A stretch of 63,346 nucleotides of DNA, filler included, from Reticulomyxa filosa (lineage: Eukaryota; Protista; Foraminifera): the NCBI GenBank assembly GCA_000512085.1. It is 15 parts of 15 records of this genome, joined end to end, with 100 filler letters (N's around TTAATTAATTAA, not from the genome) between each part and the next. Parts side by side here need not be neighbours in the genome. Positions count along the whole stretch, not along the records: positions 24,670 to 51,621 come from ASPP01019567.1; 14 more parts are not named here. The stretch is one strand, 5' to 3'. The notes beneath the pieces are model-generated. The model was not told the origin of the DNA. It searched no databases and worked only from the letters and a program-made list of their open reading frames with translations. Numbering within the stretch: position 1 is the stretch's first letter; the number at the start of each line of letters is the position of its first letter. This document shows, in pieces, positions 44,543 to 48,330 of this stretch. The position numbers were made by a program, and so were the translations under genes.

Positions 44543-47500
44543 TCACAGTTGTCGCAATATAGACAAAATTTCTTCTGATTTTTTCAATCGACTGGCCATC
44601 ATCAACGGCGATTCTTTCATCTTTGCACAATGCAATCACAACAACATAAAATTAAAGTTCATTTCTTACTAACAATAACAACAATAGTATAAAAAACACA
44701 TACACATATTACATACCAACGTTTCACTCTTGGTTTCCAGTAATTCGTTCCAGATTTTCTTTGGCATTTTTTTTTGCAAAGTTTTCAGATTGTTAATTTC
44801 ATTTCCTTTTCTATTGGCCAGACTGATGTGCAACAAATTGAACCCTTCCATATCAGTTTGTTGCGTCTATTTATGCACAATGGTAAACCAACAAGGGAAT
44901 GAAAGCATATCAACACACAAAATACAAATACATACATTGGTGGTAATCTTCCAAAATTGATCATCCGCATCTTTCGGGATCAAAAATGACATAATCTCTT
45001 CATCCATTTCCGGTGAAAGCCACAATGCAGCCATCAAAGGTGTTTGTCTCCTCTGCGAGCAAAACACATGACCCAAAAACCAAACATTAGTACAATGAGG
45101 TAAACTCACGAAAAAACGAATGTAACTCGTTCTGCTGTGACAAGAAGCCTTTGCCAAGAGCTGGCTGGCATGTACGAACTCAATACTTTCAGACGAGATA
45201 ATACATTTGGAGCTGACTTGTTGAATAGCAAATGCAGTAAGTGCAGTCCGTGCTGGATTAATTTTTTTTTAAAAAAGAAAAAATGATATAAACAATTAGT
45301 TAGCAAAAGAACAAAAACGTTACAACTTAACTGCGGCTTCTTTGGCCTTGCATTCCCAAAAAATAGTATTTTCTTTGTAGTTCCTAGGGATGAGAGCTTC
45401 GACAATAGCCTCCGAAAGTTTGGATTGCTGTAATACAGCTTTCATCAATGGGCAAAGTCCTTGCTGTACATTTTTTCATTTTTTGTTTTTTGTTTGTTTG
45501 TTTGTTTGTTTGTTTTTGATAAGCCTTGGACAACATCATAGATACATACTCCTCGTTCTGGTAATTGAATGAGAGATTGCCACCTTTCTTCATCTCGAAT
45601 GTTGTCTTTCAGTAGTTGCAGCATTTTTATCAGATCGACATATTCATTCGCAACACCAAAATGGATGCAAGAATAATTATCCTTTTTTTTTTTTTTTCCT
45701 CATATTTTTGTTTCATTGTCCATGTACAAAAGAAGAAAAAAATGCATAAATACAAATATATAAATAAATATATACATATACATGTACATATATATACATG
45801 TATATATATATGTACACATATATGTATATATATATTTATAAATATAATAGTGTTAAACAATGTCCAACGCATTCCACACGGTTCGAGCGTGATCCTTGTC
45901 CGAAGGTATAAACAATTGTATGCAGGCAATAGACTTTTGTTTCCACAGCGCGAACATGAGAGGATACGTCCCTCCTCATTTTTTTCATAGAGCTGTGCCT
46001 GCACGACGTCCAAAGGAATAAAGTCTCCACTTTGCAACAGGGCTTTGGCATATTGCAAGGTGACTTGCGGATTGCTGGCCATCTGCGTGCAAAAATTGCT
46101 GCCGGCAGCGTTTTTGAAGTTTTGAACGGCGGTGGATTGGCGAAAGTGGTTGGGGAAGTAGAGCATTAAGTTGGCCATATCGACAGGGGCAAACGAAGCA
46201 ATTCGCAGTTGGACGTGGAAAGACAAGTCGTTCATGACTAGTAAGGAGTCCATTAAGAGCGATTCTTGTCGTTGGATTTCATAAAAAGGGTGTTCGTTTT
46301 GTTTGAATCTGGCCATGATTTGAAGTAGAAACTGCACCTCGGTGACAATGCTTTTTCCGTTTTCCGTGAACAGCACATTCATTTTCACGTCTTCGTATTC
46401 CTGAGGAACGCGGACCTTGCCATCCAAAGACTGGACGGACGAGTACTTGGCAAAGCCATTTTTCATTCTTACCACTTTGAAGCTGTTGCAATAGGGAGGC
46501 GATTCCATCATACGCATAAAATGATTCAAGCCTTGGACGAGATAGTCGATATTGGTAAAGATCACTTGACAACGCAATATGTCGATGACATGGGCCGATT
46601 TGGGGAATTGCTCGTGCTTGTAATCCAGCTGCGCCTTCAATTTGCATCGCTCGTGCGTTTTAATGGGACCCTCGGAAAACGTACATTCCTGGCAGCCTTT
46701 GAACAGGTTCGCCATTTCCGTTTGGTACGACCGGTTCATTTCGTGTGCCCTCGTGAGCAGGTCATTCAAATACACGTCAAAGTCGTAACTGTGCTTGGGA
46801 TGGAATGCGACATCGCCACTGTTGATTTGAACATCGAGCAATTCCTTTTCGCTTATGAGCGACTGTACGCCCAATTCATCGTCGTCTTGTCTGCATTTGT
46901 TTTTCGCTTTCACCTCCTTTTGTTCTTGCGTTTGCTTTTGTGCTGTGTTATCCTTGTTCGATGTCCATTGAAAGAACACCAATTTTCGGTACTCTTGTTC
47001 AAACTTGGATATCTCGGCGTTGATCTCTTCGTGGAATTGGTTCGTATGTTTGAACGATTGCGACTCGCAAAGCTTTCGAATTTCCTCCCATCGTATACGT
47101 TTCCCCTTATCATCATCATTGTCCTTTTCCTCGTTTGCTGTCTTGTGTTCTTCCTTTTTTTTTTTTTTTTGGACCAATGGCAAGTCGTCCATCCAAACCA
47201 ACAAATCTCGGTTGTCCACAAGATGCTCTTCGATCCACTTCCAATCGTTGCAATGGTCGTGCAATGTGTTGATGTTCAGTATCTCTGTACATTTCTTGAA
47301 AAGGACCTCCCATAACTTTTCCTTATCGTATAGCCAACACATGTTGAATACATCGCTGCTAATTAGCTTCCCATCTTTGATCATTGCAAGCAGTGTCTTT
47401 GTCAACCCTTTCATTATTACATCAAACTCGCTTCCACTCGTCATTTTCTTCAAATATCCCAACAACTCTTCAATCTTGCTTCGCTGCTTCATTTGCGTCA

Positions 47501-48330
47501 TTGCGTACTCTCTCGTCATTTTATCTTTTTCGCTCATAAATTTCGCACTCATCAACACTTTTATTCCTTTCGTTTCTTGCTGCAATATTGCTGTTTCCAG
47601 CGCATTTTTTATAGCGTCTTGTCGCTCACCAATTTTTATCATGTCGGACTCTAACACATAGCGAGCACACATTACATTGTTTCCAGACAATCGAGATACC
47701 AAATGGCTCAATAAATCTTTCTTTTTTAATAAAAAAAAAAACAATGAGAAAAAAAAAAAAAAAAAAAAGGTCCATCCATAGATTCTTTTAAACAAAACAA
47801 ACAGAAAAGGGGCTTACCGTTATGTTGTGGAACTTGAAACCTCTGTTCCAAATAATGTCTTGATTATATCTTTCCAAAATATCGACAAACAATTTTTCTT
47901 TTTTTTCGGTAGCACAGCGGCATGCATAAGAACATATTTCGTCCTGCCAATTTTTTTTTTTTTTAGTGATCAATACGTATACATAATTAACTTTTTTTCC
48001 CCCCCCCCCTTCATATTTTTAAATTACTTCCCCCTTTTTTTTTTTGCTTTGTTTTGTCATCTGTTTGCTTTGAAAACTGATTTCTGTTCTTTATTTACGA
48101 TACTGTTAATCTTGTTTATGTGCTCCGTATGAAGAGGGTCAACCTATAGTGAACCAATTTCGTACATACAAACAATTTGACTGTTGTGGTATGCTTTTTT
48201 TTTTTGTCAATTCACAAAAGCTAGCTTCCAGATGTTTGAAAAGCTCCTGTAAAATTGAAATTATAATTATCCTACCAGCTCTTCTTCTTTTGTTTCATTC
48301 TCCACCACTCTTTCCAATTTAATTGTGTCC
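44543..48330 (-). CDS. RelA/SpoT-like (alarmone synthetase-type nucleotidyltransferase) domain fused to ankyrin-like repeats; multi-exon, 5' end uncertain
   Basis: SYNTH-like motifs in order: GPIKTHERCKLK, DY…AHVIDILRC, VVRMKNGF, EYEDVKMNV, VTEVQF, HPFYEIQR (about 46270-46700). Downstream exons give ankyrin-like units YPLMFALWKQKSIACIQLFIP, LCPLMKAVLQQ…IVEALIP, QTPLMAALW…IMSFLIP, GFNLLHISL, ESPLMMASRL…ILRQL*. There is a homopolymer frameshift near 45975. Confidence 0.75.

Follow-up and report, generated by a model that had tools for sequence, protein, structure and literature searches.

A predicted RelA/SpoT-type synthetase-fold domain within an ankyrin-like repeat protein of the foraminiferan Reticulomyxa filosa

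The window analyzed in this work is a stretch of 63,346 nucleotides, in which 15 parts of the Reticulomyxa filosa genome (assembly GCA_000512085.1) are joined end to end, and all coordinates below count along this stretch. Positions 24670-51621 of the window are a complete R. filosa contig of 26,952 bp, which contains the gene RFI_22376. This gene lies on the minus strand (47943-44543), consists of multiple exons separated by GT-AG introns, and encodes a domain that very probably has the synthetase fold and a conserved active site of the RelA/SpoT homologue (RSH) enzymes. The deposited protein (P0002, 867 amino acids) is 100% identical to a 221-residue query covering the RSH-like domain, and its GenBank annotation is hypothetical protein only. 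A first-pass annotation of the window had proposed, for the span 44543-48330, a RelA/SpoT-type synthetase domain flanked by ankyrin-like repeats and encoded by an intron-containing nuclear gene of a probably non-photosynthetic protist. The last point agrees with the source, R. filosa being a heterotrophic freshwater foraminiferan.

The gene model was derived from the sequence, from translations followed by coordinate, and from comparison with the paralogue proteins by blastp and tblastn. It contains seven introns of 69-177 nucleotides, all of the GT..AG type and all in phase 0, and the order of the exons is collinear with the paralogue proteins. RFI_22376 is a real nuclear gene of R. filosa, and in this respect the first-pass annotation was correct. 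Matches to RFI_15807 (P0011) were found in the same order for the upstream exon, the shifted-frame piece of the big exon and exons B, C, D and F, and other paralogues match these pieces as well. Of the span proposed originally, the part between 47943 and 44543 is supported. When the region was searched with the paralogues by tblastn, no family resemblance was detected upstream of 47970; the stretch 47971-48330 is without homologue support, and the 5' limit at 48330 is therefore unsupported. The features of the gene are the following:

47943-47818, minus strand: upstream repeat exon, one repeat unit followed by a GTAAGC donor; 66% identity to RFI_15807 (P0011); the most upstream exon with homology.
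47817-47721, minus strand: intron of 97 nucleotides, GT..AG, with a long T tract, identified by sequence and boundaries; P0002 has poly-Phe from the T tract.
47720-47538, minus strand: first 61 residues of the big exon, forming helical repeats of ankyrin-like kind, identified by superposition on ankyrin repeats and by the Ank_2 segment of P0008.
47537-46803, minus strand: helical region with two disordered Lys/Glu-rich linkers, without Pfam match, defined by paralogue conservation and the AlphaFold2 model.
46802-46200, minus strand: RSH synthetase-fold domain of 201 amino acids, assigned by AlphaFold2, Foldseek, VIA-align and residue conservation.
46199-45978, minus strand: helical C-terminal extension that continues the big exon as far as the frame break, conserved in paralogues, model confidence low to moderate.
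About 45978-45967, minus strand: frame break adjoining a G run (45972-45970), where the paralogue-matching frame changes.
45975-45859, minus strand: end of the big exon, which encodes repeat unit 1 (P-L-M type) in the shifted frame; 78% identity to P0004 residues 352-388; a GT donor follows.
45858-45682, minus strand: TA-rich intron, read through by the GenBank model.
45681-45550, minus strand: exon B, repeat unit 2, with AG acceptor and GTATGT donor; 57% identity to P0004 and 52% to P0011.
45463-45332, minus strand: exon C, repeat unit 3 (P-L-M type); 45% identity to P0011 residues 805-842.
45252-45127, minus strand: exon D, repeat unit 4 (L-L-H type); 60% identity to P0011 residues 866-910; the 3' end, a GTTACA donor placed by phase and by the end of the paralogue match, is uncertain.
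45052-44936, minus strand: exon E, repeat unit 5 (P-L-M type), with AG acceptor and GTATGT donor; weak matches to P0022 and P0012.
44866-44717, minus strand: exon F, repeat unit 6 (L-L-H type), with AG acceptor and GTATGT donor; 52% identity to P0011 residues 983-1028, supported by an hhalign match of the repeat profile to the P0011 tail (expectation value (E) 5e-7).
44620-44543, minus strand: exon G, short last repeat unit and stop codon (44545-44543), predicted from repeat similarity and without paralogue support.

The motif series that had drawn attention to the locus lies in a minus-strand open frame (47795-45630), which is not itself a coding sequence: its first part is the T-rich intron, and its last part consists of out-of-frame sequence and the TA-rich intron. 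The GenBank model of RFI_22376 (window 44543-48406) is wrong in detail. It treats both the T-rich intron (47817-47721) and the TA-rich intron (45858-45682) as coding, runs across the frame break between them, and ends inside the intron after exon B, so that exons C-G are absent from it. Because the introns are read through, the model contains non-coding poly-Phe and Ile/Tyr/His low-complexity stretches.

Inside the open frame the motifs follow each other in the order that had been reported, on the minus strand between 46679 and 46259. G-P-I-K..R..K starts at 46667, D-I-L-R at 46583, R-M-K-N-G-F at 46469, Y.D.K.N at 46397, E-V-Q at 46340 and H..Y-E at 46292. An AlphaFold2 model of the domain was calculated from an alignment of 80 family sequences (A3), which was also used for the sequence profile and for hhalign. 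The model had a predicted local distance difference test score (pLDDT) of 91.3 and a predicted template modelling score (pTM) of 0.84, and its elements are arranged in the order long helix, strand, helix, strand, helix, strand, loop, beta-hairpin and long helix. In a Foldseek search of the PDB all of the top 50 matches were RSH synthetases (E from 4.7e-7); they included RelP, RelQ/SAS1, SAS2, an exported Streptomyces synthetase, Tas1, Rel, SpoT and FaRel2. Superposition by VIA-align yielded Z 14.2 for RelQ (147 residues, 2.7 Å), 14.0 for SaEAS (8vx3), 12.6 for RelP, 11.8 for CapRel and 10.7 for Tas1, and Z of about 10, with about 105 residues aligned, for Pol lambda, Pol mu and TdT. A second model comprised the whole big exon (580 amino acids, pLDDT 79). 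When it was compared with 48,161 chains independently of Foldseek, ranks 1-11 were all occupied by RSH proteins (Z 11.8-7.2), and the best non-RSH transferase reached Z 6.9. In the ESM Atlas the same fold was found in unannotated ciliate and diatom clusters, in clusters fused to tetratricopeptide repeats (TPR) or Ank, and in a bacterial PF04607 cluster (template modelling score 0.68). Comparison of a predicted structure with RelQ and RelP was one of the checks suggested by the first-pass annotation, and its outcome bears out the proposed RSH synthetase-like domain: all top-ranked structural matches are RSH proteins, and no other fold fits the model better.

The domain is part of a large gene family that has had no name so far and that, judged by sequence matches, is expanded in foraminifera. 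A phmmer search with the 201-residue stretch (46802-46200) against 1.84 billion representatives of 50% identity clusters returned 586 matches at E ≤ 1e-3 and 313 at E ≤ 1e-10. The motif residues coincide with invariant columns of the family, and this, together with the 586 matching representatives, excludes a chance origin of the motif series. At least 14 paralogues are present in R. filosa, and the family is represented in the EukProt entries of Nonionella stella and Bolivina argentea. These entries are presumably transcriptome-derived, which would mean that the relatives are expressed. All family matches for which the source names an organism are foraminiferal; the remaining ones are on ENA or JGI contigs, and both ENA contigs that were looked up proved to be Tara Oceans scaffolds. 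No relatives were found on viral contigs searched with P0163. The expectation that related domains exist in other protists and have escaped functional study thus agrees with the finds in Nonionella, Bolivina and the Tara scaffolds, and with the literature searched, where no paper joining ppGpp and foraminifera was found.

Some members of the family deserve mention in their own right. GenBank gives the name 'Ras guanine nucleotide exchange factor, partial' to two R. filosa proteins, P0008 (ETO20660) and P0171 (ETO35982). In P0008, the one scanned with Pfam, nothing but ankyrin repeats was detected; both proteins align with the window protein across the whole big exon, and the name looks wrong. 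On a Tara scaffold, L012:1886-6607 (P0009) is an uninterrupted frame of 1573 amino acids with a large ankyrin array and two stretches matching the RSH-like domain. L013, from the same sample and with a GC content of 27-30%, carries a stand-alone family member of 182 amino acids.

The codons of the most conserved residues were located as follows:

46661-46659, 46649-46647 and 46637-46635, minus strand: Lys, Arg and Lys of the basic motif, assigned by conservation.
46583-46581 and 46574-46572, minus strand: Asp and Arg of the Asp strand, assigned by conservation.
46469-46458 and 46397-46383, minus strand: Arg-x-Lys-Asn and Tyr-x-Asp-x-Lys, assigned by conservation.
46340-46338, 46334-46332 and 46292-46281, minus strand: Glu, Gln and His..Tyr, assigned by conservation.

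In domain numbering, Lys56, Asp74, Arg77, Arg112, Lys114, Asn115, Lys140 and Glu155 are invariant in A3. When 149 family members were compared, Asp74, Lys56 and Asn115 were present in all, Glu155 and Lys48 in 147, Arg52 in 145 and Tyr136 in 143, and the copy in the window had the consensus residue at all 20 positions checked. The putative catalytic acidic residues, which had been described as kept, are therefore conserved in the family as well (Asp 149/149, Glu 147/149). The family has a single invariant Asp and neither a D-x-D/E pair nor a G-S motif; the absence of the pair argues against the two-carboxylate strand of the classical Pol-beta type. In three paralogues, P0011 (RFI_15807), P0010 and P0007, conserved residues of the basic or the Tyr-x-Asp motif are lost, with Asp and Glu kept, and judging from these sequences the expanded R. 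filosa family may hold decaying or non-catalytic copies.

Correspondence to known RSH residues was sought by hhalign, with A3 aligned to a reference profile of 11 RSH sequences. This profile was composed of E. coli relA and ten RSH genes (L002-L011) from a 'phages' collection, which represent long Rel, RelA and SpoT types as well as RelP/RelQ-like small synthetases; most of these records are unverified and probably bacterial. In the resulting alignment (E 0.17) G-P-x-K corresponds to G-R-x-K of RelA, Lys56 to the second conserved Lys, Asp74 to the Asp of D..G.R, Y-x-D-x-K to Y-x-S-x-H, and Glu155-x-Gln to the E-x-Q of E-I-Q-I-R-T. The family Asp and Glu thus fall on motif positions of RelA, Rel and the small alarmone synthetases, as far as this collinear alignment can be relied upon, and the spacing of D..R differs from that of the canonical D..G.R. 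An hhalign comparison with E. coli RelA alone (E 0.83) gave a meaningless alignment and was discarded. Many of the L002-L011 records are labelled Listeria, Staphylococcus or Enterococcus phage or 'Bacteriophage sp.' and contain ordinary bacterial rel, relA, relP and relQ genes; marked UNVERIFIED, they look like bacterial contigs and not phage genomes.

The seven coding pieces after the domain contain one unit of 25-50 amino acids each. The units follow a single consensus in which P-L-M and L-L-H types alternate, as the first-pass annotation had noticed, and one unit was found on the upstream side (47943-47818). Pfam Ank models did not match at E ≤ 10 any of nine pieces of the repeat region when each was searched by itself (two on the upstream side of the domain, seven on the downstream side), nor was an Ank match obtained in the large open frame, and the designation 'ankyrin-like' is therefore based on three further kinds of evidence. 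The model of residues 1-61 of the big exon can be superposed on the repeats of I-kappa-B-alpha, DARPin and AnkB with Z 5.3-6.8 and a root mean square deviation of 1.5-2.2 Å over about 55 residues. The same residues align to the Pfam Ank_2 segment of the paralogue P0008, so that both marks of an ankyrin stack, helix-turn-helix units and homology to recognized Ank repeats, were found in this part of the protein. More distant relatives have strong Pfam Ank arrays before and after the RSH-like domain, and a weak match (pairwise E 0.005) links the repeat profile to an Ank repeat of P0015, at its G-x-T-P-L start. The stretch of roughly 245 residues that separates the N-terminal repeats from the domain is helical and conserved in the paralogues, and no Pfam family was recognized in it. 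In the model of the big exon, pLDDT is 81-96 at residues about 71-180 and about 211-250, and confidence is low at 184-204 and 258-273. As a whole, the big exon is 39% identical to P0008.

We consider it likely that RFI_22376 encodes ankyrin-like repeats arranged in a chain, into which are inserted a helical region and a very divergent RSH-fold catalytic domain that acts as a pyrophosphate transferase. The domain would bind ATP-Mg by means of the invariant Asp together with the basic G-P-x-K..R..K helix. A 3'-OH would be activated by the invariant Glu, and the acceptor, for which a purine nucleotide is the most probable candidate, would receive the beta-gamma pyrophosphate of ATP at its 3' end, to yield a product of the (p)ppGpp or (p)ppApp type. 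It is from the fold and the conserved residues that we infer this ATP-dependent transfer to a 3'-OH. Pfam detected no HD, TGS or ACT domain in the 721-residue open frame, as the first-pass annotation had stated, and none in the nine exon pieces or in 16 relatives; lacking a hydrolase domain, the enzyme would have synthetase activity only. A partner-binding or regulatory part would be formed by the ankyrin-like repeats together with the helical region. NACHT, NB-ARC or another sensor NTPase, the hallmark of STAND/NLR proteins, was not found by Pfam in the window protein and 16 relatives, and a role of the repeats in regulation, signalling or defence is speculation. We would give even odds to the product being a free alarmone-type nucleotide. 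The acceptor is not predictable, as the nearest structures include the guanine-specific RelQ, the promiscuous SaEAS, the adenine-specific Tas1 and the tRNA-modifying CapRel and FaRel2.

Bacteria and plastids are regarded as the places where (p)ppGpp and (p)ppApp are made. It is conceivable, but on balance doubtful, that Foraminifera, and perhaps ciliates, diatoms and other protists, possess cytosolic, nuclear-encoded, active alarmone-type pyrophosphokinases that are switched by partner proteins through Ankyrin or TPR parts, and that these serve plastid-independent (p)ppGpp/(p)ppApp signalling or cell-autonomous defence.

Several observations speak against assigning RSH chemistry to the domain. 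The link to the RSH enzymes rests on fold and motifs and is not accompanied by a significant sequence link. A Pfam search had been suggested as a check, and it did not support the assignment: PF04607 (RelA_SpoT) did not match the 721-residue open frame at E ≤ 1, NCBIfam gave nothing relevant, and among the 80 relatives a single one matched PF04607 (E 0.065). Sequence searches of the PDB with the single domain and with a profile of three paralogues found nothing. With the 80-sequence profile two weak matches were obtained, of which one was relevant, Tas1, at E 2.1; it spans the basic motif and the shared D-x-x-R. The hhalign alignment between A3 and the reference profile is collinear over 160 columns and not significant, HMMER comparisons between the family and RSH profiles and their sequences stayed below 10 bits, and a word-indexed homology search with the 80-sequence profile retrieved unannotated relatives only, none of them with PF04607. 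The residue equivalences given above, drawn from this alignment and from fold ranges, are accordingly provisional. In addition, a shared fold is no proof of the same chemistry or of the same acceptor, and the RFI_22376 copy, with its frame break, may yield no full-length protein.

Other functions can be imagined for the same domain. Bacterial CapRel, FaRel2 and PhRel2 pyrophosphorylate the 3' CCA end of tRNA. With fold and chemistry unchanged, the foraminiferan enzyme could likewise use the CCA end or another RNA as acceptor, and would then shut down translation and make no messenger. The structural matches include CapRel (7ztb, Z 11.8) and FaRel2; CapRel is controlled by a sensing region fused to the enzyme, an arrangement that resembles the repeat-flanked layout, and the foraminiferan family has many conserved basic residues. 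However, the nucleotide-making RelQ (Z 14.2) and SaEAS (14.0) score higher than CapRel, and RSH acceptors cannot be read from sequence, as illustrated by SaEAS, which is promiscuous and makes (p)ppApp and (p)ppGpp, and VpEAS, which uses guanine nucleotides only (PMC12691689). On this evidence an RNA acceptor appears unlikely. Still less probable is a generic nucleotidyltransferase of the Pol-beta superfamily, of the cGAS, OAS, TENT or MenT kind, which would transfer nucleotidyl groups and resemble RSH enzymes at the superfamily level only. RSH enzymes do belong to this superfamily, and Pol lambda, Pol mu, TdT, GLD-2, a cGAS-like receptor and CdnE are among the fold matches; but in the scan of 48,161 chains such proteins reached Z 6.9 or less, against 7.2-11.8 for RSH proteins, and covered about 100-125 residues, against 128-164. 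The one invariant Asp, without D-x-D/E pair or G-S motif, does not fit this class either, and in the non-significant hhalign alignment the order of the motifs follows RSH over the whole domain. We attach equally little weight to the idea of a pseudoenzyme or scaffold, in which the fold would be kept for binding nucleotides or alarmones of prey bacteria, without catalysis. R. filosa does feed on bacteria, which are rich in (p)ppGpp, yet near-invariance of the Asp, the Glu and the full basic set in 149 diverged members is the pattern of a catalytic site and not of binding only.

A different question is whether this particular copy is intact. The frame of the big exon aligns with the paralogues to about 45981, and the next 37-39 residues match 13 paralogues (12 by blastp and P0064 by tblastn) only in another frame (45975-45859), with up to 78% identity and at the paralogue positions that follow directly. 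The frameshift that the first-pass annotation had placed near 45975 is thus present in the assembly, between about 45978 and 45967 and beside the G run. No intron signal able to explain it was found, and the paralogues align without a gap there. The RFI_22376 copy is either mis-assembled or a young pseudogene, with one frame break just after the catalytic domain. If the break is real, no protein with both the catalytic domain and the C-terminal repeats would be made from this copy, the family remaining functional. We regard this as possible but the less probable outcome. It is consistent with the 13 paralogues reading straight through where the window copy needs a frame change, and with the loss of conserved residues in P0011, P0010 and P0007, by which decay does occur in the family. 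On the other hand, the break is the only one, the seven downstream coding pieces being open with splice signals and repeat motifs intact; an A run near 47905 had raised the suspicion of a second break, but the frame is continuous there and conserved in P0011. The catalytic domain keeps all 20 conserved positions checked, and the break adjoins a homopolymer run, a typical site of assembly errors. Part of the R. filosa genome was presumably read by pyrosequencing. The single break, the intact downstream exons and the kept catalytic residues suggest, as far as can be judged from sequence, an assembly error or a very recent event.

The neighbours of RFI_22376 are unrelated to it: a membrane-protein open reading frame at 42981-44103 and a zinc-finger gene at 49507-51354. 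The latter, on the plus strand toward the contig end, encodes C-terminal C2H2 zinc fingers and very long poly-Asn and poly-Gln tracts; translated from the opposite strand, the (AAT)n tract at about 49817-49984 gives poly-Tyr or poly-Ile. Farther away, a very long multi-exon gene occupies 27763-40291 on the plus strand. Its product has right-handed beta-helix and Chlamydia-PMP-like repeats; after these come a part rich in Cys, with a weak match to NCD3G, and a multi-pass membrane part, with a weak match to TRP, all Pfam matches being below threshold. No small alarmone hydrolase was found in 24670-51621.

Among known systems, the long RSH proteins (Rel, RelA, SpoT and plant RSH1-4) carry HD N-terminally and TGS and ACT/RRM C-terminally, an arrangement that Pfam did not detect in RFI_22376. 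The small alarmone synthetases RelQ/SAS1, RelP/SAS2 and SaEAS (5ded, 6ewz, 8vx3) likewise consist of a single synthetase domain without hydrolase, TGS or ACT, and they lead the structural matches (Z 12.6-14.2, about 150 residues, 2.7-3.2 Å). As far as the non-significant hhalign alignment shows, they share with the foraminiferan domain the order of the basic helix, the Asp strand, the Tyr, the Glu-x-Gln strand and the His/Tyr helix. However, identity is only 12-16% and PF04607 misses the foraminiferan domain, which has D-x-x-R and K-N-G-F in place of D-x-x-G-x-R and K-D-Y-I and about 20 extra residues between the third and fourth motifs. Moreover, RFI_22376 encodes a eukaryotic repeat protein of more than 700 residues from an intron-containing gene, whereas the bacterial enzymes have about 200 residues and are stand-alone or secreted.

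Tas1/Apk1 (6ox6), the (p)ppApp synthetase toxin of Pseudomonas aeruginosa type VI secretion, is the only RSH protein touched by the family profile, at the non-significant E 2.1 mentioned above, and it has the highest identity (19%) among the fold matches listed, with Z 9.1-10.7. Unlike Tas1, a bacterial toxin that is secreted and has an immunity protein, RFI_22376 has nothing comparable visible at its locus, and the supplementary text of PMC12691689, including its lists of Apk1/Tas1 homologues, names neither Reticulomyxa nor eukaryotes. Nor were features of a toxic small alarmone synthetase (toxSAS) module found at RFI_22376, a eukaryotic multi-exon gene with no adjacent or fused antitoxin. 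CapRel (7ztb) is similar in that an RSH synthetase (Z 11.8, 156 residues) is fused in the same chain to a non-catalytic region able to gate it. CapRel, however, is a bacterial anti-phage protein whose sensor is a small C-terminal antitoxin domain, whereas in RFI_22376 the corresponding part would be the ankyrin-like repeats, for which gating is pure inference.

Atkinson et al. (2011, PMC3153485) reported the divRel proteins, synthetase-only and unclassified, from Dictyostelium and from three fungi and two diatoms. Like the foraminiferan family, divRel (Dictyostelium, Aspergillus, Gibberella, diatoms) is synthetase-only, occurs in non-plant eukaryotes and may lack a matching hydrolase. In contrast to divRel, which was found with RSH profile hidden Markov models (HMMs), the foraminiferan family is missed by such models, is fused to Ank/TPR and is strongly expanded in Foraminifera; it is by this description that the two are set apart. 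Outside plants and algae, the few divergent eukaryotic synthetases listed there include none that has been characterized (PMC3153485). The RSH census relied on profile HMMs (10.1101/575399), and because Pfam's own RSH model misses the foraminiferan family, published censuses probably missed it too and would then have under-counted eukaryotic RSH enzymes. Fold-based searches are needed before a lineage is called synthetase-free. What was already known of RFI_22376 is its deposition as a hypothetical protein; what is new is a eukaryotic branch of the RSH fold that is fused to repeats, escapes Pfam and comprises hundreds of clusters with a strictly conserved putative active site. If active, its members would be the first repeat-fused eukaryotic alarmone synthetase family, and a lead to the source of ppGpp in those eukaryotes that have a Mesh1-type hydrolase only.

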